From the NCBI GenBank assembly GCA_950097015.1, contig CATNEN010000013.1, positions 434,001 to 498,000 on the forward strand: a stretch of 64,000 nucleotides of DNA. The letters run 5' to 3'. The stretch is from Macrostomum hystrix. Lineage: Eukaryota > Animalia > Platyhelminthes. A program made the position numbers and the translations under genes. Positions 315 through 13,770 of this stretch are shown piece by piece. The notes beneath the pieces were generated by a model. That model was given only the letters and a program-made list of their open reading frames with translations. It was not told where the DNA came from and searched no databases. The number at the start of each line of letters is the position of its first letter. Position 1 is the first letter of the stretch.

Positions 315-3300
315 TCAAGCAGATCGAACGCTCAAAGACGGGCTGGTGCCGGGCCTTGGCAGCAGACAGTCGCCGCTGACCGAATCGGCGCTGCCCGGAG
401 TCACCGACACGGCGGCCGCTGCAGCCGCCACCGCTACAGCGGCTTCGCTGTCGGACGCCGGATCGGATGATGAAGCTACGGCGATGCCAGATGCCGAAAC
501 CAAGGGCCGCTCAATCTGAAAGCCCAGGGGACAGACGGACTTGTCGCTGGCTGGCAGTAGGACATTTTCGGATGGCTGACCGGCCAGGAAGCCGAGAAGT
601 TCGCGCAGATTTTGCGCTGTAGCTCGCAGATTCGGAGGTCGCCTGGTGTTTAAACCGGCGTTGCACCACAGGCCGTAGATGTTCAAATTGAGTAGGAAGA
701 CGCCGCGCAGAAAGTAGCTGCGCTCCTTGCCCCTACTGTAGAGCGGGAATTCGCGATCGGCAAAGTTTAGAATGACGTCGTCGCGAACGCGTGATTTCGA
801 GCCGCGACAAATCAGACAGTGACGCTGAGGGGAGTGATGATCGGAATATTTTCACACCGAGAACATCCTGGCTAACTCCTCCGAAGGAGGAATTCCGCTC
901 GGTAAATTTTAATTGCTATCAAACCTTCATGGAACTAACTGAATTCTGTAAACATGTTCTGAACAGCTGAAAATGTAGCGAAGCGGTTGAGGCAAACAAA
1001 TATCATTTCAAATTTTGTATTCGTAGTCCTAGGAGACCCCGGCTGTCCTGTCTACTGAGCGTAAATGGGAATTTTGCTTTGCCCCACTCCCGCGCTAGTG
1101 AAATTTCGGGGTTTGCTTCTAGTCTCCATGTTCAGAGATCATTAAGGGAACCCAACGATGCAATGATTATAAAGCTTTTTATTTATCAATAACCGAAGCC
1201 TTCCAGCCTTACCAGGGGGCAGTCCATAACTGACGCAATCAGCTGGGTGAGCTGGGCAGTCATGCCGAATGCGGCCGCATATTTGGCCTCCTCGGCGCTA
1301 CTGAGCCGGCCCTCTAATCGTTTCGACACCGGCAAGGGCACGTCTGCGATGCTCTCGTCGCCTAGACGAAAAATTGCGGCCAGCTGGTCGAACCAGGCCC
1401 GACGCTGGTCGGCTAGCTGGGCGCGGGCCTGCTGCAGCTCCAGCTGGCCTACGCGCAGGCTGGAACACCCCGACCGGACAGAGTCTGCGGCAGCTTCAGC
1501 GGCGACGCTCACTGCAGAGCGGCCAAGAAGTTTTCGAGTTTGAGTTTGACTAGCAGCGGAGAGATAGACACCGAAAAAAACCAAACAATGGCCGGAACTC
1601 ACGCGCGGCAAGGTTATCTGCTAGCTGGCTGGTCTCCTGACGCAGCGCGGCCAGTCGCTGGCGCCATTCGTCTAGCATAGCGGCCTGGCCGGCCACCTGG
1701 CTGCGTCGCAGTCGTACCAGGGCGCGCATTTCCTCTGCGCGGCGTCGGCCAGCCAGCGGGCGTTCAGCTTCGGCCAGTTGACGCCTGACGGCCAGCTGAT
1801 CGGCTTCCAACTCGACGGAGCGCAGCCCGGCTGCTATGAGGCGGCGCATTCCGGTGAGACTGTAGGAGCTGGAATGCTCTCTGCGACTCCGATTGGGCAG
1901 TACTGCGCCAGCCAATGGGCAGGCGAGCGGGCCGCGATTGGCCAGGAAAGTGACGCCCTTAAGGCGCAAGACCAGTGTGGGTCTAAAAGTACATTGAGAT
2001 TGACGCTGCTAGCTAAAGTTACAGTTTTTGATACACAATGTTAGCAATACTTGCAGGGGGATTATGCGCAAAAAAGCAACATTTGGGAACAGTGGAGGAC
2101 AAAAATCTGCCCATCCCGCAGACCGCTGAGCAAGCACTCACTCAGGTGTGTACAACTGGACTGACTTTCGTGTTCTTTCTCACTGTGCCCCTTGCGGTTT
2201 CGCCCTTAATGGGCGTAAATTTCGGGACTTCAATGATTAAAGCGTTCTTGTTTATCCGCCTAGAAACACATGCAGGGCCGCAGATACAATATTAAAATAG
2301 TTTTTTGCTTCTTAAAAAGCTTTCTAGTAAAATAAATAAATAAATAAATTTACGTTTCACTGGTGCAGGCAGCGGCCATCAGTAACGCTGCCACATCGTC
2401 TTCCCGCTGGGCCGGCCAAGTCAGGCCGTCTGAGTCCAAACGGACGGCGGCTTCGAACCATGGCGAGGCCGCGGAGCGAACAGCCCTACCCGGGCCACGA
2501 TAGAATGCCACAGTGAAGGCGGCCAGGGCGCGGCTCTGCTCTGTTAGGGGCGAGCCAATCAGAGGCAGGCGATCCCATGTGGCCAGGCGGGCTCCCTGGA
2601 GTCCAAGATGACAATCGATGGATAGATAAACATTACACCTAGTCTATTACGGCCAGACGTACAGCTATTCTGCCCAGAGAGGAGGCAATTCTGCCCATTC
2701 AGCTGACTCCTGAGCACACACGCACACTGATACCGTACGCAGGCATACGCTCACACAGGCAGTTTATCATCGTCAGGCAGTGCACTCTTCACTGTGCCAT
2801 GGAGGTTGGCACTCAAGGGTGTAAATTGCACGACAAACCCCCGTGCCTTCTCTCCGCTGCTGCGCCCCAATTTAATGTATTCTTGCAGCGAAATCGAGCT
2901 CAGGGACCTTTGTGCGAGAGGCAAACGCGTTAGACCCATCTGCCACTCACCGCCCTTGCTCAAGGACACAATCTTTTTCTATGCGGCAGGATTTGAACCT
3001 CCGACCTCTCGTTTATAAGTGATATGCTTTTAAAGTGATCCATGAAACTGTTGCTAAACGTGCTTTTGGGTGCGCAAATGTCGCCCCTGGCCTCACCTGC
3101 CGATGGCTGAGCTCAAACTGGCCGTGATCAGACTTATAAAAGTACTCTCCGGGCTGGCTGTCCGGGTGGCGCAGGGTGAAGAACACGGGCTGGCTGCGAA
3201 GGCGAGTGAACTCCAGGCCAGACTCGGCGATCTGCAGGGCCAGGCAGTCCAGATGGCGAATCCGCAGCGAGGCGACAAAGTCGCGCAGGGCCGCCTCTTC

Positions 3301-3441
3301 AACGGCCGCCTCGGCGACACCATTTGTAATTTTATTGCCATCAACAATGCCAGAGCTAAGGTCACTGCTGCTGCTGACAACTGCGGGCATAGTGGGATAA
3401 GTTATAATCGGAGCTGCTTGCGACTGTCTCTTGGGGCCCAT
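315..3441 (-). CDS. UVRAG: UV radiation resistance-associated protein (PI3KC3 complex II subunit), 5 exons: 3441-3097, 2595-2354, 1859-1603, 1511-1213, 824-315; about 550 aa
   Basis: All junctions are GT-AG and phase-compatible (total 1653 nt). Motifs match UVRAG from memory: LRIRHL..VFFTLRH..FYKSD (C2-like region), a coiled coil, AAAFGMTAQLTQLIASVMDCPLRH, and GSKSRVRD..REFPLY..F..GVFLLNLNI. Confidence 0.88.
2681..2955 (-). mobile_element. tRNA-derived SINE family A, in UVRAG intron 1
   Basis: A-box-like tggcagatggg and B-box-like gagctcgatttc; body shared with copies at 26499, 51004, 58520 and 59558. Confidence 0.85.
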
Positions 3442-3582
3442 GGCGTGTCAGAAACGCCATGGAATGCTGGATTCAGCGGCACGGTGCGCGATACAACAGA
3501 AACTGACCGATTGCCGGCAGAGCAGAATAGCGACTGTTGGCTGCGGGTGCGAAATCAACACACAGTAATGCGCGACTGCTTC

Positions 3583-6208
3583 CTGGTGGGGCAGGTCACT
3601 CACTAGTGTACTGGTGGGGCAGGTCACTCACTAGTGTACTGGTGGGGCAGGTCACTCACTAGTGCACTGGTGGGGCAGGTCACTCACTAGTGTACTGGTG
3701 GGGCAGGTCACTCACTAGTGTACTGGTGGGGCAGGTCACTCACTAGTGCACTCACTGGTGGGGCAGGTCACTCACTAGTGCACTCACTGGTGGGGCAGGT
3801 CACTCACTAGTGCACTCACTGGTGGGGCAGGTCACTCACTAGTGCACTCACTGGTGGGGCAGGTCACTCACTAGTGCACTCACTGGTGGGGCAGGTCACT
3901 CACTAGTGCACTCACTGGTGGGGCAGGTCACTCACTAGTGCACTCACTGGTGGGGCAGGTCACTAACTAGTGCACTCACTGGTGGGGCAGGTCACTCACT
4001 AGTGCACTCACTGGTGGGGAAGGTCACTCACTAGTGCACTCACTGGTGGGGCTGTTCACTCACTAGTGTACTGGTGGGGCAGGTCACTCACTAGTGCACT
4101 CACTGGTGGGGCAGGTCACTCACTAGTGTACTGGTGGGGCAGGTCACTCACTAGTGCACTCACTGGTGGGGAAGGTCACTCACTAGTGCACTCACTGGTG
4201 GGGCAGGTCACTCACTAGTGTACTGGTGGGGCAGGTCACTCACTAGTGTACTGGTGGGGCAGGTCACTCACTAGTGTACTGGTGGGGCAGGTCACTCACT
4301 AGTGCACTCACTGGTGGGGCAGGTCACTCACTAGTGTACTGGTGGGGCAGGTCACTCACTAGTGTACTGGTGGGGCAGGTCACTCACTAGTGTACTGGTG
4401 GGGCAGGTCACTCACTAGTGTACTGGTGGGGCAGGTCACTCACTAGTGTACTGGTGGGGCAGGTCACTCACTAGTGTACTGGTGGGGCAGGTCACTCACT
4501 AGTGTACTGGTGGGGCAGGTCACTCACTAGTGCACTGGTGGGGCAGGTCACTCACTAGTGCACTGGTGGGGCAGGTCACTCACTAGTGTACTGGTGGGGC
4601 AGGTCACTCACTAGTGCACTGGTGGGGCAGGTCACTCACTAGTGCACTCACTGGTGGGGCAGGTCACTCACTAGTGCACTCACTGGTGGGGCAGGTCACT
4701 CACTAGTGCACTGGTGGGGCAGGTCACTCACTAGTGTACTGGTGGGGCAGGTCACTCACTAGTGTACTGGTGGGGCAGGTCACTCACTAGTGCACTGGTG
4801 GGGCAGGTCACTCACTAGTGTACTGGTGGGGCAGGTCACTCACTAGTGCACTCACTGGTGGGGCAGGTCACTCACTAGTGCACTGGTGGGGCAGGTCACT
4901 CACTAGTGCACTGGTGGGGCAGGTCACTCACTAGTGCACTGGTGGGGCAGGTCACTCACTAGTGCACTCACTGGTGGGGCAGGTCACTCACTAGTGCACT
5001 GGTGGGGCAGGTCACTCACTAGTGCACTGGTGGGGCAGGTCACTCACTAGTGCACTGGTGGGGCAGGTCACTCACTAGTGCACTGGTGGGGCAGGTCACT
5101 CACTAGTGCACTCACTGGTGGGGCAGGTCACTCACTAGTGCACTCACTGGTGGGGCAGGTCACTCACTAGTGCACTGGTGGGGCAGGTCACTCACTAGTG
5201 CACTCACTGGTGGGGCAGGTCACTCACTAGTGCACTCACTGGTGGGGCAGGTCACTCACTAGTGCACTGGTGGGGCAGGTCACTCACTAGTGCACTGGTG
5301 GGGCAGGTCACTCACTAGTGCACTCACTGGTGGGGCAGGTCACTCACTAGTGCACTCACTGGTGGGGCAGGTCACTCACTAGTGCACTGGTGGGGCAGGT
5401 CACTCACTAGTGCACTCACTGGTGGGGCAGGTCACTCACTAGTGCACTCACTGGTGGGGCAGGTCACTCACTAGTGCACTGGTGGGGCAGGTCACTCACT
5501 AGTGCACTGGTGGGGCAGGTCACTCACTAGTGCACTCACTGGTGGGGCAGGTCACTCACTAGTGCACTGGTGGGGCAGGTCACTCACTAGTGCACTCACT
5601 GGTGGGGCAGGTCACTCACTAGTGCACTGGTGGGGCAGGTCACTCACTAGTGCACTGGTGGGGCAGGTCACTCACTAGTGTACTGGTGGGGCAGGTCACT
5701 CACTAGTGCACTGGTGGGGCAGGTCACTCACTAGTGCACTGGTGGGGCAGGTCACTCACTAGTGCACTGGTGGGGCAGGTCACTCACTAGTGCACTGGTG
5801 GGGCAGGTCACTCACTAGTGCACTCACTGGTGGGGCAGGTCACTCACTAGTGCACTCACTGGTGGGGCAGGTCACTCACTAGTGCACTGGTGGGGCAGGT
5901 CACTCACTAGTGCACTGGTGGGGCAGGTCACTCACTAGTGCACTGGTGGGGCAGGTCACTCACTAGTGCACTCACTGGTGGGGCAGGTCACTCACTAGTG
6001 CACTCACTGGTGGGGCAGGTCACTCACTAGTGCACTCACTGGTGGGGCAGGTCACTCACTAGTGCACTCACTGGTGGGGCAGGTCACTCACTAGTGCACT
6101 GGTGGGGCAGGTCACTCACTAGTGCACTGGTGGGGCAGGTCACTCACTAGTGCACTCACTGGTGGGGCAGGTCACTCACTAGTGCACTGGTGGGGCAGGT
6201 CACTCACT
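3583..6208. repeat. 28/32-bp satellite, about 88 units
   Basis: Unit ctggtggggcaggtcactcactagtg(t/c)a, with or without an extra ctca. Confidence 0.97.
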
Positions 6209-7012
6209 TATTCAAAAGCCACAAATAATATTTGGAGGTTTATAGCTCATAGATTTCAGACTCGCGAAGAAATCTTGAAACTATGAAAAGAAAGAAAACA
6301 AACTCGCATTCTGCATCCTGATGACAAACGAATAGGATTTATACCTGTATATTGAACAGCCATAGCAACATTGGGTTAGGAGAAACAGTAGAAATTTTCT
6401 GAAACTTTGTACACTTTTGAAATTCATTTCTTTTACATAGTGTGAATTGAAAATTAAAATTAACCAATTAGCACATAATTGTGCAGTTAATTATACAGAA
6501 GATAACGCTGCGAATAATCTTATTCATTTAGCTTGCTTGAATTTACTAGTAATCTTGAAAGTTGATTATACATTTTTATACTAGTTAAGCACTGAATAAT
6601 TTGTTTTGATGATTGAATCAAACAAGAGTCACAAACAACACAGGGGCAATCAAAGTTATTTTTTAAACTAAAATTAATGAAAATAGCGATCAACAAGTCT
6701 TGCGGGTGTTAAATATATATTTGTTTTCACCCCTCTGCCAGACAATATTTCAAATACCCCAAATTTACATTTTACTGTACGCTCGTATCTCCCAGAATAT
6801 TCAACCAGTCGCCATGAAAATCCAGAACTTGGCTAAAATTATCCAATGAAACAACTTCCAGAATCACAAAACATCACAAAATTGTCAAGAAATTTCATCG
6901 GTCATTCGGTTTGGGAGCTGGCGTGAAGTAGGCACTGGGTATTTGAATATCCCCGTTGTCTTTCTCCAGGGAGAAAATAGGCTGGTCTCTCTACAGCTAA
7001 ATAATATGAACA

Positions 7013-7237
7013 TTACTTTCCCGTAATCTTGCTAATTGGATCGCGAAGCGAATCGGCCAATTTAGCCGCCTTCAATCGAAGCATGCCCAATGGCACAGAT
7101 GAATTGGCGTACATGCACAGCAGGATGCTACTAACGTAGGCTATGTAAAGACTGCCGTTGGCGCACACCACCGTCATGTCCTGCAGGCCGGCCGGGGCAA
7201 TGGAAGACTGGCTGCCGCTGCCAAGACTGCTGCTAGG

Positions 7238-7268
<31 letters not shown>

Positions 7269-7483
7269 ACAGAGCAGCGTTCCATGGTGTCCCACAGGTT
7301 GGCAGCGATAGCGGCCAGCACGCGAGCATCTGTATCAGCCGTGTAACCGGAGCAGGCCAGGAGAGCGCCATCTGGCGATAGCAGCAGCGAGGATTGGACA
7401 CCGTCGGTGTTGGTCTGGCTCAGTAGCTGCGCTACGGAGCGCGGCTTCAGCGTTATTCCAGTCTGCAATTCATGCGGCTTTAA
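7013..7483 (-). CDS. LAMTOR2: Ragulator subunit LAMTOR2 (p14, roadblock fold), single exon, no genomic in-frame ATG
   Basis: LKPRSVAQLLSQTNTDGVQSSLLLSPDGALLACSGY..DTDARVLAAIAANLW..LLCMYA..V..GML..KA..L closely follows LAMTOR2 ([25 protein letters not shown]..). Confidence 0.93.
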
Positions 7484-7520
7484 CTAGCTATTTGATTTTT
7501 TAATTGGATGGCGAATGATT

Positions 7521-9797
7521 GGACTGGCTTAGCGAAGCCACACCTGTAGGGACTGGCTTAGCGAAGCCACACCTGTAGGGACTGGCTTAGCGAAGCCACA
7601 CCTGTAGGGACTGGCTTAGCGAAGCCACACATGTAGGGACTGGCTTAGCGAAGCCACACCTGTAGGGACTGGCTTAGCGAAGCCACACATGTAGGGACTG
7701 GCTTAGCAAAGCCACACATGTAGGGACTGGCTTAGCGAAGCCACACCTGTAGGGACTGGCTTAGCGAAGCCACACACGTAGGGACTGGCTTAGCGAAGCC
7801 ACACCTGTAGGGACTGGCTTAGCGAAGCCACAAATGTAGGGACTGGCTTAGCGAAGCCACACCTGTAGGGACTGGCTTAGCGAAGCCACACATGTAGGGA
7901 CTGGCTTAGCAAAGCCACACATGTAGGGACTGGCTTAGCGAAGCCACACCTGTAGGGACTGGCTTAGCGAAGCCACACATGTAGGGACTGGCTTAGCAAA
8001 GCCACACATGTAGGGACTGGCTTAGCGAAGCCACACCTGTAGGGACTGGCTTAGCGAAGCCACACCTGTAGGGACTGGCTTAGCGAAGCCACACCTGTAG
8101 GGACTGGCTTAGCGAAGCCACACCTGTAGGGACTGGCTTAGCGAAGCCACACATGTAGGGACTGGCTTAGCGAAGCCACACCTGTAGGGACTGGCTTAGC
8201 GAAGCCACACATGTAGGGACTGGCTTAGCAAAGCCACACATGTAGGGACTGGCTTAGCGAAGCCACACCTGTAGGGACTGGCTTAGCGAAGCCACACATG
8301 TAGGGACTGGCTTAGCAAAGCCACACATGTAGGGACTGGCTTAGCGAAGCCACACCTGTAGGGACTGGCTTAGCGAAGCCACACCTGTAGGGACTGGCTT
8401 AGCGAAGCCACACCTGTAGGGACTGGCTTAGCGAAGCCACACCTGTAGGGACTGGCTTAGCGAAGCCACACCTGTAGGGACTGGCTTAGCGAAGCCACAC
8501 ATGTAGGGACTGGCTTAGCGAAGCCACACATGTAGGGACTTGCTTAGCGAAGCCACACCTGTGGTGACTGGCTTAGCGAAGCCACACCTGTGGGGTCATA
8601 TCTGTGGGGACTAGCTTAGCGAAGCCATACCTGTGGGGACTAGCTTAGCGAAGCCACACCTGTAGGGACTGGCTTAGCGAAGCCACACATGTAGGGACTG
8701 GCTTAGCGAAGCCACACATGTAGGGACTTGCTTAGCGAAGCCACACCTGTGGTGACTGGCTTAGCGAAGCCACACCTGTGGGGTCATATCTGTGGGGACT
8801 AGCTTAGCGAAGCCATACCTGTGGGGACTAGCTTAGCGAAGCCACACCTGTGGGGTCATACCTGTGGGAACTAGCTTAGCGAAGCCACACCTGTGGGGAC
8901 TGGCTTAGTGAGGTCATACCTGTGGGGACTGGCTTAGCGAAGCCACACCTGTAGGGACTTGCTTAGCGAAGCCACACCTGTGGTGACTGGCTTAGCGAAG
9001 CCACACCTGTGGGGTCATATCTGTGGGGACTAGCTTAGCGAAGCCATACCTGTGGGGACTAGCTTAGCGAAGCCACACCTGTGGGGTCATACCTGTGGGA
9101 ACTAGCTTAGCGAAGCCACACCTGTGGGGACTGGCTTAGTGAGGTCATACCTGTGGGGACTGGCTTAGCGAAGCCACACCTGTAGGGACTGGCTTAGCAA
9201 AGCCACACCTGTGGGGACTGGCTTAGCGAAGCCACACCTGTGGGGTCATACCTGTGGGAACTAGCTTAGCGAAGCCACACATGTAGGGACTGGCTTAGCG
9301 AAGCCACACCTGTGGGGTCATATCTGTGGGGACTAGCTTAGCGAAGCCATACCTGTGGGGACTAGCTTAGCGAAGCCACACCTGTGGGGTCATACCTGTG
9401 GGAACTAGCTTAGCGAAGCCACACCTGTGGGGACTGGCTTAGTGAGGTCATACCTGTGGGGACTGGCTTAGCGAAGCCACACCTGTAGGGACTGGCTTAG
9501 CAAAGCCACACCTGTGGGGACTGGCTTAGCGAAGCCACACCTGTGGGGTCATACCTGTGGGAACTAGCTTAGCGAAGCCACACCTGTGGGGACTGGCTTA
9601 GTGAGGTCATACCTGTGGGGACTGGCTTAGCGAAGCCACACCTGTGGGGACTGGCTTAGTGAAGGCACACCTGTGGGGACTGGCTTAGCGAAGCCACACC
9701 TGTGGGGACTGGCTTAGCGAAGCCACACCTGTGGGGACTGGCTTAGCGAAGCCACACCTGTGGACTGGCTTAGTGAAGCCACACCTGTGTGGACTGG
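7521..9797. repeat. 29-bp satellite with internal hairpin; higher-order variants in the distal half
   Basis: Unit gactggcttagcgaagccacacctgtagg; variants containing ggtcatatctgtggg recur after about 8570. Confidence 0.97.
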
Positions 9798-10225
9798 GTT
9801 TGGTACGCATGAAAACAATAGAGAAAATATAGACAAAGACTTTCATATGAATGGGCTAATGTACGAAGCTTACAGAATTTATTTATTAAAAATCGGCTAG
9901 CGCAATAAGAATTTGCAGTCGGAATTGCAATAAAAATATTATTTTTTACATAAAACTATTTGACACAATGAATTGCAAGAAATAATTTACCAATTTTACT
10001 TAGTGAAATGAAGCACCTATAAGCTAAATATAAGAAATCATACACTAAATTTGTGGCACTAAAATTTAGTTTTTGCTGGTATAATAGACTACAATATGCA
10101 AATGCTATAATTGCAATACAAAATTCATAAAACTAAAAATGTCGCTCGCAGTATATCAAACACTTTTTCAGAAAAGCACAAGCAAAGTACAGAAAAAATG
10201 CTATAAAATGCTGCCAATATACAAC

Positions 10226-10777
10226 TCAACGCCTGTCCACACTGAGCGACTCCAGTTGATTAGACAGATTAGACAGATCCTCAGCAATGGACTGCAGGCC
10301 GCATATTAAGCTGCTGGCCCGCTCATTGTACACTTGCAGGGTGTCAGTCAGTTGGGATAATTTCTGACGCGCCGGAGACGGTATTTGCTCAACGTCGGCG
10401 AACAGGTTGATGTTCAAGTTTACCTGCTGCTGCTGCTTCCCCGGCTGCGATGGAGGCGGAAGCTGCAGTCGAGGAGACGAAACTGACGGCGGATCAAGTC
10501 GCAGGTTTTCATTCTCTGTTGGCCTGCTTGATTTCGCGCGATTCGGAGCCTGTATGAGCTGTTTAGACTGTTGCTTCTGGCCAGTGGCAGCGGTTCGAAT
10601 CGGCGGCTGCGGCTCCTTCGAGGCTGTCGCAGTGACGGCGGCGCGAGTTCGATTAGCAACAACGGAGGCGGGAACTGGCAGCCGGGACTGTCTCCAGTAG
10701 CGGTGGCCCGCACTGGCAGTAACTGGCGCCTGCTGCTGCTGCAGGGTAGGCCGCGTGCTGCCCGATTTGGTTGCCAT
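10226..10777 (-). CDS. Disordered N-terminus plus C-terminal coiled-coil protein, possibly BLOC-1 subunit 3-like (about 183 aa)
   Basis: GC-rich single-exon ORF with ATG at 10777, preceded by a strong pyrimidine tract and AG. The C-terminal heptads NLNINLF..ARQKLSQLTDTL..LQSIAEDLSNLSNQLESL resemble the BLOS3 architecture; that assignment is from memory only. Confidence 0.6.
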   Translation of the reverse strand: MATKSGSTRPTLQQQQAPVTASAGHRYWRQSRLPVPASVVANRTRAAVTATASKEPQPPIRTAATGQKQQSKQLIQAPNRAKSSRPTENENLRLDPPSVSSPRLQLPPPSQPGKQQQQVNLNINLFADVEQIPSPARQKLSQLTDTLQVYNERASSLICGLQSIAEDLSNLSNQLESLSVDRR

Positions 10778-13770
10778 CACTGCTTGCTGAAGAGGAAATG
10801 AAAAACCGTAATCATTTTCTAATCTAACACAGAGCTTTCCTTCAACAAATTGTATGAAAAAACACCCAAAAATTTGGTGTGCCTTAATATTTTCATCTTA
10901 CATTCTGACATTTCCATTCCACAATCCAAATAATCTGAGCAGCAGTAAATAAAAAAATGGGATTAGAGACTTTGAATGTATTTGCCATCAATTGAGTTTT
11001 ACAAGGTCTGTAATTGTAGCTCATGAAATGCTCTTTCTTCTCCTTCCAACACTTTTAAAGGTTTAAATAGAAAAAAAGGATTTTACAAAAATGTTAAACA
11101 ATTTACAATTTATTTGACAATATATAATTAGTCATATTTATTGTTGTACAGACCTAAGTTATAATTGACAGACAACTGAAAAGGTTAAATTATCAAGTTA
11201 GCCAATTAGTTGAGCTAATTTAAAAAAGTCTCTAAAGGTCAAACAAATGATTTCAAAAAGGTTTCCCATTTAACATTGGTTTTATACCCATTCACAATGA
11301 ATTTTCTGGTTTCTTATAATCATGCAATGCTTCTTGTAAAAAAAGAAATCATGCACAATTCTTTTAAAGTATTGATTTGGTAAATACAACAATTAAAGGC
11401 AATTGTCAGTGCCAAGTAGCTATTATAATTTCAAAAACTATGAGTATATATAGTCTACTATTCTTGACTCCATGGGCTAAGCAAAAAATGCTACACCTAG
11501 TAAAAATCCTGAGCTATAGCTAAAACTATTTCTGTGCTACTTTTTGTATCATACACATTTCTTATAATATGGAACATAGATGTGCTAGGGAAGAAGACAA
11601 ATTCACAAATGATAGCTAGTTATCATAAATGCACAAATATAATTAATTTACATTATCTTCCATCTTTTGTATACATTTCTACCCAAAACTTTTGCTTTGT
11701 GTATTGATAACAGACAAGTTTCTCAATAATTTATTATTTTTAAGTTAATTGTTATGTATAGGGCCTATCATATAAAAATATCTTACAGGTAGGCCAACCA
11801 AAAAATACTAGCTATATTACACCCACCCTTACCCACCCTAGGAGCTTAGGAGCCATACCGAAAAAAAACTAAAAAAACACTGTCTGCAGGTAGGCCTAGG
11901 CCTACCAAAATACAAAGTACTAAAATGCCTTGATACAAAAATGCATGGCACCCTTTCTAATGAAATGAACAGACACAGGTAAGATAATGACTGACAGGTT
12001 GTCTGGTGCCCCTTGGCCTTGATTCATGGTTGCATTCTACAATTAGCCTAGCAGGCTAGGATTTAAAGTAAAAAATGCACCAACAACATATTCATCACAA
12101 AGCAAAGGGTTATGAAATAGAGTATAATAACAAAAAATACATTTTAGACATCTTAAGGTACGAAGTAAAAAAATTTAATCCACTTTCTTTGAAAATTAGT
12201 CTTTTAAATTGGCTATTATCTTTGACCAGCTAGAACTAGAACCTAAAGAACACACAAGAAAACCCTAACAATGAGACTACAGCTACCACTAAGCTTATTG
12301 CACTGTTAGTTTCAGAGAAGGGCTAAAGGCGGTTAGACACTAAAAAATTACTTAAAAAGTTACATCTGAAAACCTGTTAAATACGCAACAGCGAATGTTA
12401 CGAAATGACATGTCAAAAATAACGCTCCATCCTCCATGGAATAACATCAGTGAATGACATCATGTTACACATCCAACATTTTTTGACTGGATGATTGCAC
12501 AGGATGTTTTATGATGAGTGAAACTTATTAATCTTTATAATAGACCAATAGAACTTTATTAGCGAAAACATAACGCAACCCGGCTCGTTGATTATGGCAT
12601 AGGCCAAAGTAAAATAATTAGAAACTTTACGTCGACTGTTATTCGTTGAAATAAAAGGTTTGAAAAGCGCAACGTTAGGAATACACAGAAAAGCAAATCC
12701 TATTAACTTATAGAAACTCATTTGCCTCTAGTTTCTTAAAAAAGTATCTCAATAAAATATTAAAGATTTCAACAATAAAAAAAAGAACTGTACAAAAATT
12801 TGTGTGCCCTAGTCTTGTATCTTTCTACTATTTTAATTTACCCGTTCTTCCCAGTTAAATTATCATACTTTTTGCAATAAACTGTCAATATCTGATCTAT
12901 CGACGTACGCAGAACCAATATAGTAATTAGTCATGCTTAAATTGTAGGAAGAGGGATTTTTCGATTTTTCAGGGAAGAAATATCCCGCGCATTATTGTGT
13001 TTGTTTCTTTGTGTCTTCTTATTTTCACGTCGTTACGTCAGTAGCTATAGACATATAGTGACTACGCGGTCTTGGCTTTAACCTAGTCCAGTCTCTCGAT
13101 ACCTATTGCCAAATGTCAATGAGCGAATTTATTAAAAACTGTAAAATATTATGCTGTTTCTTTTCAAATTTGTCCTGATATAAGTCGTATGAATCATTGC
13201 TTATTTTTTCTTTGTATAGTATTTTTTTCTTATCGCTTTAGATATTTATTGAACATTATTAGTTGTTATGAACCTAAGTCCTTCAATATAGTTAATTGCA
13301 GTTATTGAATATTTTTTACTTTTTACAATGTCATAAAGTTATGGTAAAGGCCGCCATACATAATACTTTGATAAGACACATCAATGGTTTTCATATAAAG
13401 GCCTGCTATCTTTTTGATATAGGAACAACCCTTTATCATATCCAATAGCAATATTATACATAATTATGATTAGTCTAACTATCAATACACAATAGCTTAG
13501 TCAGTTAGTTCTATTATGAAGTTTTCTATTCTATATGATTGAATGAGTCATGGTCTATTTACCTTCAAACAAAAAAATAATTTTAGATTCAAAAATGTTT
13601 CATAGTTATTTATTATTACTTACTCAATTTGCCATAATATAAGGCTATAAGCAGAAAAATCTGTATGTGTCAAAGATGTTTACGTTTTTTATTCAATTTT
13701 ATCAGAATTAATTATTGGCCTACTTAGTATTTTTTGCCTGACCTGTATAATTCTGCTAATTTTCAGTGAG

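Follow-up and report, generated by a model that had tools for sequence, protein, structure and literature searches.

According to PMC12582326 and PMC9851317, every flatworm spliced leader reported so far ends in ATG, and more than 40 cDNAs of Schistosoma mansoni need this ATG as their initiator. Both trace the use of the 3'-terminal AUG of the leader as a flatworm initiator to Cheng, Cohen, Ndegwa and Davis (2006, J Biol Chem 281:733). In the genus Macrostomum one 35-nt spliced leader has been described, ending in ...TTATTGCATG; the M. lignano leader ends in ...TTGCATG (Ustyantsev and Berezikov 2021, PMC8629364), and those of M. cliftonense and M. hystrix likewise end in ATG (Wiberg et al. 2023, PMC10468722), which agrees with the expectation of an earlier note on this DNA that the host leader is AUG-terminated. 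Leader addition is described as a routine step of maturation for ~20–30% of Macrostomum genes (PMC8629364, PMC10468722). For M. lignano, PMC8629364 gives [T/C]TNCAG as the trans-acceptor motif and GT[G/A]AG as the donor motif; it uses 1 kb as the operon criterion and states that repeats inflate intercistronic distances.

Here we describe a LAMTOR2 gene in a stretch of 64,000 nucleotides from M. hystrix (the window). From the reading frame, assembled transcripts and a comparison with M. lignano, we conclude that the start codon of this gene is very probably donated by the leader, trans-spliced at 7462, and that the genome holds no start codon for it. The locus shares with the class of Cheng et al. 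2006 an AUG-ending leader, a phase-0 acceptor, the lack of an own AUG for the conserved N-terminus and the leader AUG as the first AUG. It differs from that class in that the host is a free-living Macrostomum and not Schistosoma, the gene is LAMTOR2, and translation at the leader AUG is what we infer here. With the Macrostomum leader and operon system, as far as it is set out in PMC8629364 and PMC10468722, it shares a leader that is identical over the 22 nt seen, an acceptor that fits [T/C]TNCAG, a gene conserved from flatworm to human, a same-strand neighbour at ≤1 kb after repeat adjustment and a repeat-filled spacer. As a mechanism, this was described in flatworms in 2006, and the LAMTOR2 case is confirmed but ordinary, with nothing new in principle; our literature search found no paper that names LAMTOR2 as dependent on a leader AUG. 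The features of the locus are collected in Table 1, in which, as in the text, a slash at a splice junction marks the exon boundary.

Table 1. Features of the LAMTOR2 locus, in window positions.
Feature	Positions	Strand	Basis or remark
Upstream gene, own ATG, 183 aa, coiled-coil-like C-terminus	10226–10777	minus	holds internal CAG/GTAAAC, last exon base 10424
29-nt tandem array, ~78 units, 2.28 kb	7521–9797	none	most of the 2.76-kb spacer from the upstream gene to the LAMTOR2 acceptor; presumed outron/intercistronic
In-frame TAG closing the LAMTOR2 frame upstream of the acceptor	7484–7486	minus	ORF reading
TTA after gctag/, alternative acceptor	7481–7483	minus	no evidence of use
Out-of-frame ATG, 6-codon ORF	7471–7473	minus	in outron, lost on trans-splicing; contigs without coverage past 7463
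Trans-splice acceptor TTGCAG/	7463–7468 (AG 7464–7463)	minus	contigs of X2, X3 and X5 depart from the genome here; fits [T/C]TNCAG
LAMTOR2 coding exon, TGITLKPRS...ISKITGK	7462–7013	minus	149 codons plus stop, intronless, phase 0 right after the acceptor
ACG (Thr) at the place of human LAMTOR2 Met1	7451–7453	minus	PDB alignment; codon is ACA in M. lignano

Judged by sequence similarity, the minus-strand ORF is LAMTOR2. It matches the Pfam family Robl_LC7 (PF03259) with 41 bits (cut-off 23), and a phmmer search against solved structures returned human and mouse LAMTOR2 chains (E = 5e-25), the alignment running from residue 1 to ~125 in two blocks (1–60 and 71–125) that flank a Gly/Ser-rich insert of ~28 residues. 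The predicted protein thus shares the Roadblock/LC7 fold sequence with human and mouse LAMTOR2 (p14, ROBLD3; a Ragulator subunit; PDB 6nzd_B and 1vet_B) in an almost full-length alignment, and the N-terminal motif L(K/R)P..(A/T)Q(L/V)LSQ(T/A)NT.GVQS is kept. Compared with these proteins it would carry four additional N-terminal residues (M-T-G-I), a Thr for Met1 and the Gly/Ser-rich insert, while its gene lacks introns and, on our reading, receives a start codon in trans.

The ORF extends from the in-frame TAG (7486–7484) to a TAA stop at 7015–7013, and no in-frame ATG is present from this TAG down to Met61 (LWDTMERC; residue number of the leader-initiated protein). The reading of the ORF together with the Pfam and phmmer searches therefore bears out the earlier note as to the identity of the gene, the upstream TAG and the missing in-frame ATG. 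The note had further described a single ATG nearby (7473), lying in another frame and closed by a stop after six codons; it indeed reads ATG AAT TGC AGA CTG GAA TAA, and this description was correct, as was the observation that two candidate acceptors, AG/TTA (7483) and CAG/ACT (7462), each open the LAMTOR2 frame at phase 0. The further proposal that M-LKP at 7483 corresponds to the canonical LAMTOR2 start ML(R/K)P proved mistaken: in the structure-chain alignment the stretch homologous to ML(R/K)P is T-LKPRS at 7453–7439, which puts the position of human Met1 at ACG 7453–7451. By alignment, the ancestral genomic start codon is gone in both the window species and M. lignano.

Five public runs contain the stretch, and the contigs of four of them were mapped to 6215–7520. 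Runs X2, X3 and X5 belong to one study and bear one organism label, that of the species of the window. The run data are assembled contigs whose library type is unrecorded; the leader joint and the missing intergenic coverage point to RNA. Each of these three runs yielded a contig of ~630 nt with a depth of ~117, spanning 6846–7463 with 0 mismatches and, in a GGC run, a single length difference of 9 letters. Past 7463, these contigs carry 22 non-genomic letters, the reverse complement of which is positions 13–34 of the published M. lignano leader, the 13 bases at the 5' end of the leader being absent from the contigs. The G at 7463 (minus strand) can be read either as the end of the genomic AG or as the final G of the leader. 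With this letter assigned to the leader, the joint is canonical, ...TTGCATG/ACTGGAATAACG, and the exon begins at 7462; the loose end of the leader in the window species is ...TTATTGCAT plus G. In RNA letters the joint reads ...UUGCAUG/ACUGGAAUAACG, which translates in frame as M-TGITLKPRS.... The central claim of the earlier note, that a leader ending in AUG donates the LAMTOR2 start, is thus upheld by an in-frame leader joint at 7462 and by the terminal ATG of the Macrostomum leader. Two places had been offered for the joint, of which 7462 is seen in the contigs of all three runs and 7483 in no contig. The acceptor at 7483 is rejected: no contig reaches it, it is unconserved in M. lignano, and it offers TAG where [T/C]TNCAG has CAG.

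In each of the three runs, the summed depth over 7271–7446 equals the depth of the single leader-joined contig, and contigs of the mapped runs give no coverage of 7464–7520. The leader-joined form is therefore the sole assembled 5' end, in assemblies of a kind that lose rare isoforms. Moreover, no variant letters were reported in the RNA contigs within 7013–7463, which argues against editing or an ATG-restoring allele at 7452. A search of the window for the leader RNA gene gave 0 matches at ≤2 mismatches, and no Rfam family reached its gathering score.

We propose the following course of events. The pre-mRNA probably forms the downstream portion of a transcript that is either polycistronic or extended far to the 5' side. 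At TTGCAG/ACT (exon start 7462) it is joined by trans-splicing to the 35-nt spliced leader common to the genus, the last three bases of which are AUG. Ribosomes would then start at the leader AUG and produce a protein of 150 aa, M-T-G-I-T-L-K-P-R-S..., that is, the human LAMTOR2 N-terminus extended by four residues and with Thr where the ancestral Met stood. In the mRNA composed of leader and exon, the AUG at position 33 comes first and opens a 150-aa ORF starting MTGITLKPRSVAQLL; it directly abuts ACU GGA AUA ACG CUG, in frame and with no intervening stop. The two AUGs that follow (positions 127 and 169) belong to other frames (ORFs of 65 and 51 codons), and a start at the next in-frame AUG would cost 60 residues and with them about half of the roadblock fold. 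It follows from this layout that full-length LAMTOR2 can be obtained only via the leader AUG or via an AUG from another upstream exon. That ribosomes start at the leader AUG is strongly suggested by the Schistosoma precedent and by the lack of any other route to the conserved N-terminal half.

Initiation at a near-cognate genomic codon, which would make the leader irrelevant, was considered for ACG 7453 at the ancestral Met place, TTG 7468 and CTG 7450. ACG 7453 sits exactly at the aligned human Met1, and low-efficiency initiation at ACG, CUG and UUG is possible in eukaryotes according to a general statement in PMC9851317. However, scanning ribosomes would first reach the in-frame AUG that lies 12 nt upstream of ACG in the mature mRNA, TTG 7468 is part of the outron and hence not of the mRNA, and in M. 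lignano the places of ACG and CTG are taken by ACA and TTA, so that no near-cognate codon is kept. We regard this explanation as highly improbable, and ACG 7453 is rejected both as a start and as a sequencing error or edited site, in view of the ACA in M. lignano and the invariant RNA contigs.

The comparison with M. lignano covered three loci of assembly GCA_002269645.1 (L001–L003, of which L002 lies on NIVC01002849.1). The best protein match of the ORF is an M. lignano protein annotated as 'partial' (83% identity), which bears out the flatworm origin that the earlier note had inferred. All three loci have the identical junction ...ccgcag/ACTGGAATAAC and carry ACA at the Met1 position, and none has an in-frame ATG upstream of the junction. 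The window and M. lignano are 87% identical over the 60 nt that follow the acceptor and 35% identical over the 60 nt that precede it. Within the first 12 codons the two differ by synonymous changes only (ACG to ACA, CTG to TTA and TCC to TCA), and over 149 codons the comparison with the orthologous M. lignano locus gave dN 0.068, dS 1.14 and dN/dS ~0.06. Given this dS, the window belongs to a Macrostomum species other than M. lignano. The synonymous-only beginning and the low dN relative to dS indicate that the frame is under purifying selection from the acceptor onward. The ACA at the Met1 position in M. lignano argues against a sequencing error in the window and also against a conserved near-cognate start. 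The cluster of M. lignano proteins to which the best match belongs consists of three members, two 'partial' LAMTOR2 proteins and one fusion model; the label of the former two suggests that the annotators, too, found no start. Both 'partial' coding sequences begin at VAQLL, 27 nt past the acceptor (L001:5974–6001), and omit nine conserved, evidently coding codons (TGITLKPRS).

These comparisons also bear on whether the missing start codon could be an artefact or the gene could be dead. LAMTOR2 is intronless in the window and lacks an ATG, as a processed pseudogene might, and a single T-to-C change, by sequencing error from ATG to ACG, would account for the ACG. Set against this, the RNA contigs of three runs agree with the genome, with 0 mismatches and no variant at 7452, and the three M. 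lignano loci are likewise without ATG; dN/dS is ~0.06, the locus is expressed at a depth of ~117, and its synteny with both neighbours is kept. We find either an artefact or a dead gene scarcely credible; a pseudogene or retrocopy is rejected on the grounds of selection, expression and synteny. The loss of an ATG by sequencing error had been named in the earlier note as a finding that would refute the proposal, and it did not hold, given the ACA in M. lignano and the mismatch-free RNA contigs.

On the minus strand, the upstream gene (10777–10226) is followed by the 29-nt array, LAMTOR2, a 28-nt array and an ATG14/UVRAG-like gene (start 3441). The upstream protein is 54% identical to its M. lignano counterpart; Pfam gave no significant match for the ORFs neighbouring LAMTOR2 in the window, the upstream protein included. 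The downstream gene is called ATG14/UVRAG-like on account of a weak precomputed match of its M. lignano orthologue. The order of upstream coiled-coil protein, LAMTOR2 and ATG14/UVRAG-like gene (window 315–10783) is kept at the three M. lignano loci despite a dS of >1. The upstream gene ends 2763 nt before the LAMTOR2 acceptor, a gap that shrinks to 486 nt once the 7521–9797 array is subtracted. LAMTOR2 therefore has a same-strand neighbour within 1 kb after repeat adjustment and is itself the trans-spliced downstream gene, which together are what PMC8629364 uses to define an operon.

The neighbourhood offers another possible source of an AUG. The upstream gene, from its ATG at 10777 through 118 codons to a donor after 10424, might be cis-spliced to 7462, giving a fusion of 268 aa as the main or functional source of LAMTOR2. 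Such a product is modelled in M. lignano: PAA54869.1 (282 aa; L002:3001–5703) has an exon 1 that takes in 129 codons from the start of the upstream gene, ends at CAG/GTGAAC inside that gene and is spliced in frame, across a 1854-nt intron, to ACTGGAATAAC at the same acceptor. In the window, joining 10424 to 7462 at the homologous site (CAG/GTAAAC) likewise keeps the frame, which is open for 268 codons plus stop, and acceptors are described in PMC12582326 as widely common to cis- and trans-splicing in flatworms. Against this stands the transcript evidence, since in all three runs the 5' part of the ORF is covered by a single contig, which bears the leader and accounts for the whole depth there. 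Two of the three M. lignano loci are annotated without a fusion. Furthermore, the GT of the 'donor' is what any Val codon begins with, and the Val here is conserved, hence the conservation of the GT is uninformative; GTAAAC and GTGAAC only half fit the donor motif GT[G/A]AG, and the upstream ORF stays conserved beyond the candidate donor site. We therefore consider it improbable that the fusion is the main or a functional source of LAMTOR2. In the window, where the contigs show the leader-joined form only, it may be a minor by-product. The M. lignano model could reflect a genuine minor isoform, point to co-transcription or be an artefact of annotation; should real RNA underlie it, co-transcription in that species is implied. 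The claim of the earlier note that LAMTOR2 is translatable only after trans-splicing is thus sustained in part: the leader-joined form is the only 5' end assembled, but PAA54869.1 cis-splices an ATG-bearing upstream part to the same acceptor.

A combination of both sources can also be envisaged, in which LAMTOR2 lost its own start codon throughout Macrostomum and receives an AUG either from the leader, yielding the free protein, or from the cis-spliced upstream cistron, yielding a fusion with ~120 residues of the neighbour, with a choice that is perhaps regulated, perhaps via the acceptor-rich array. We think this very unlikely; if true, splicing would decide how much of a Ragulator subunit is made, or in which form. 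The suggestion of the earlier note that Ragulator/mTORC1 output is coupled to trans-splicing is speculation, leader addition being routine in Macrostomum.

Donation of the start codon by the leader, which we prefer, makes this locus a transcript-backed case of a conserved housekeeping gene, encoding a predicted scaffold subunit of Ragulator/mTORC1, whose correct annotation and expression need the leader AUG. Gene finders mishandle such genes in two ways, both seen in M. lignano: two copies carry the label 'partial', and the third is merged with its neighbour. Designs of transgenes or knock-ins for Macrostomum must provide an ATG for genes of this kind.

Both spacers of the three-gene cluster are mostly satellite. 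The 28-nt tandem array has ~89 copies over 2.6 kb (3583–6208) between the 3' end of LAMTOR2 and the ATG14/UVRAG-like gene. Read on the minus strand, the 7521–9797 array contains 34 ATGs, and the trans-acceptor motif YTNCAG occurs in it 23 times (10 per kb, vs 2.5 per kb in the window); these sites may, going by their sequence, act as decoy acceptors.

Within the LAMTOR2 gene, the window and the contigs of X2, X3 and X5 have GGC (poly-Gly) runs at 7232–7275 whose lengths are 9 letters, or three codons, apart. The Gly/Ser-rich insert is thus polymorphic in length with the frame kept, and its length also differs from that in M. lignano. The 3' UTR includes a dispersed short repeat (6839–6947) to which dozens of unrelated contigs per run match over ~50–110 nt at 90–95% identity; summed depth over the repeat rises to ~1560, and the LAMTOR2 contigs stop at its edge (6846–6848). 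Contigs of lower depth (17–31 vs 117) run on downstream of the LAMTOR2 contig end over 6311–6875, with several SNPs and indels of 8 to 16 nt relative to the window, and possibly represent an isoform with a longer 3' UTR, precursor RNA or another haplotype.
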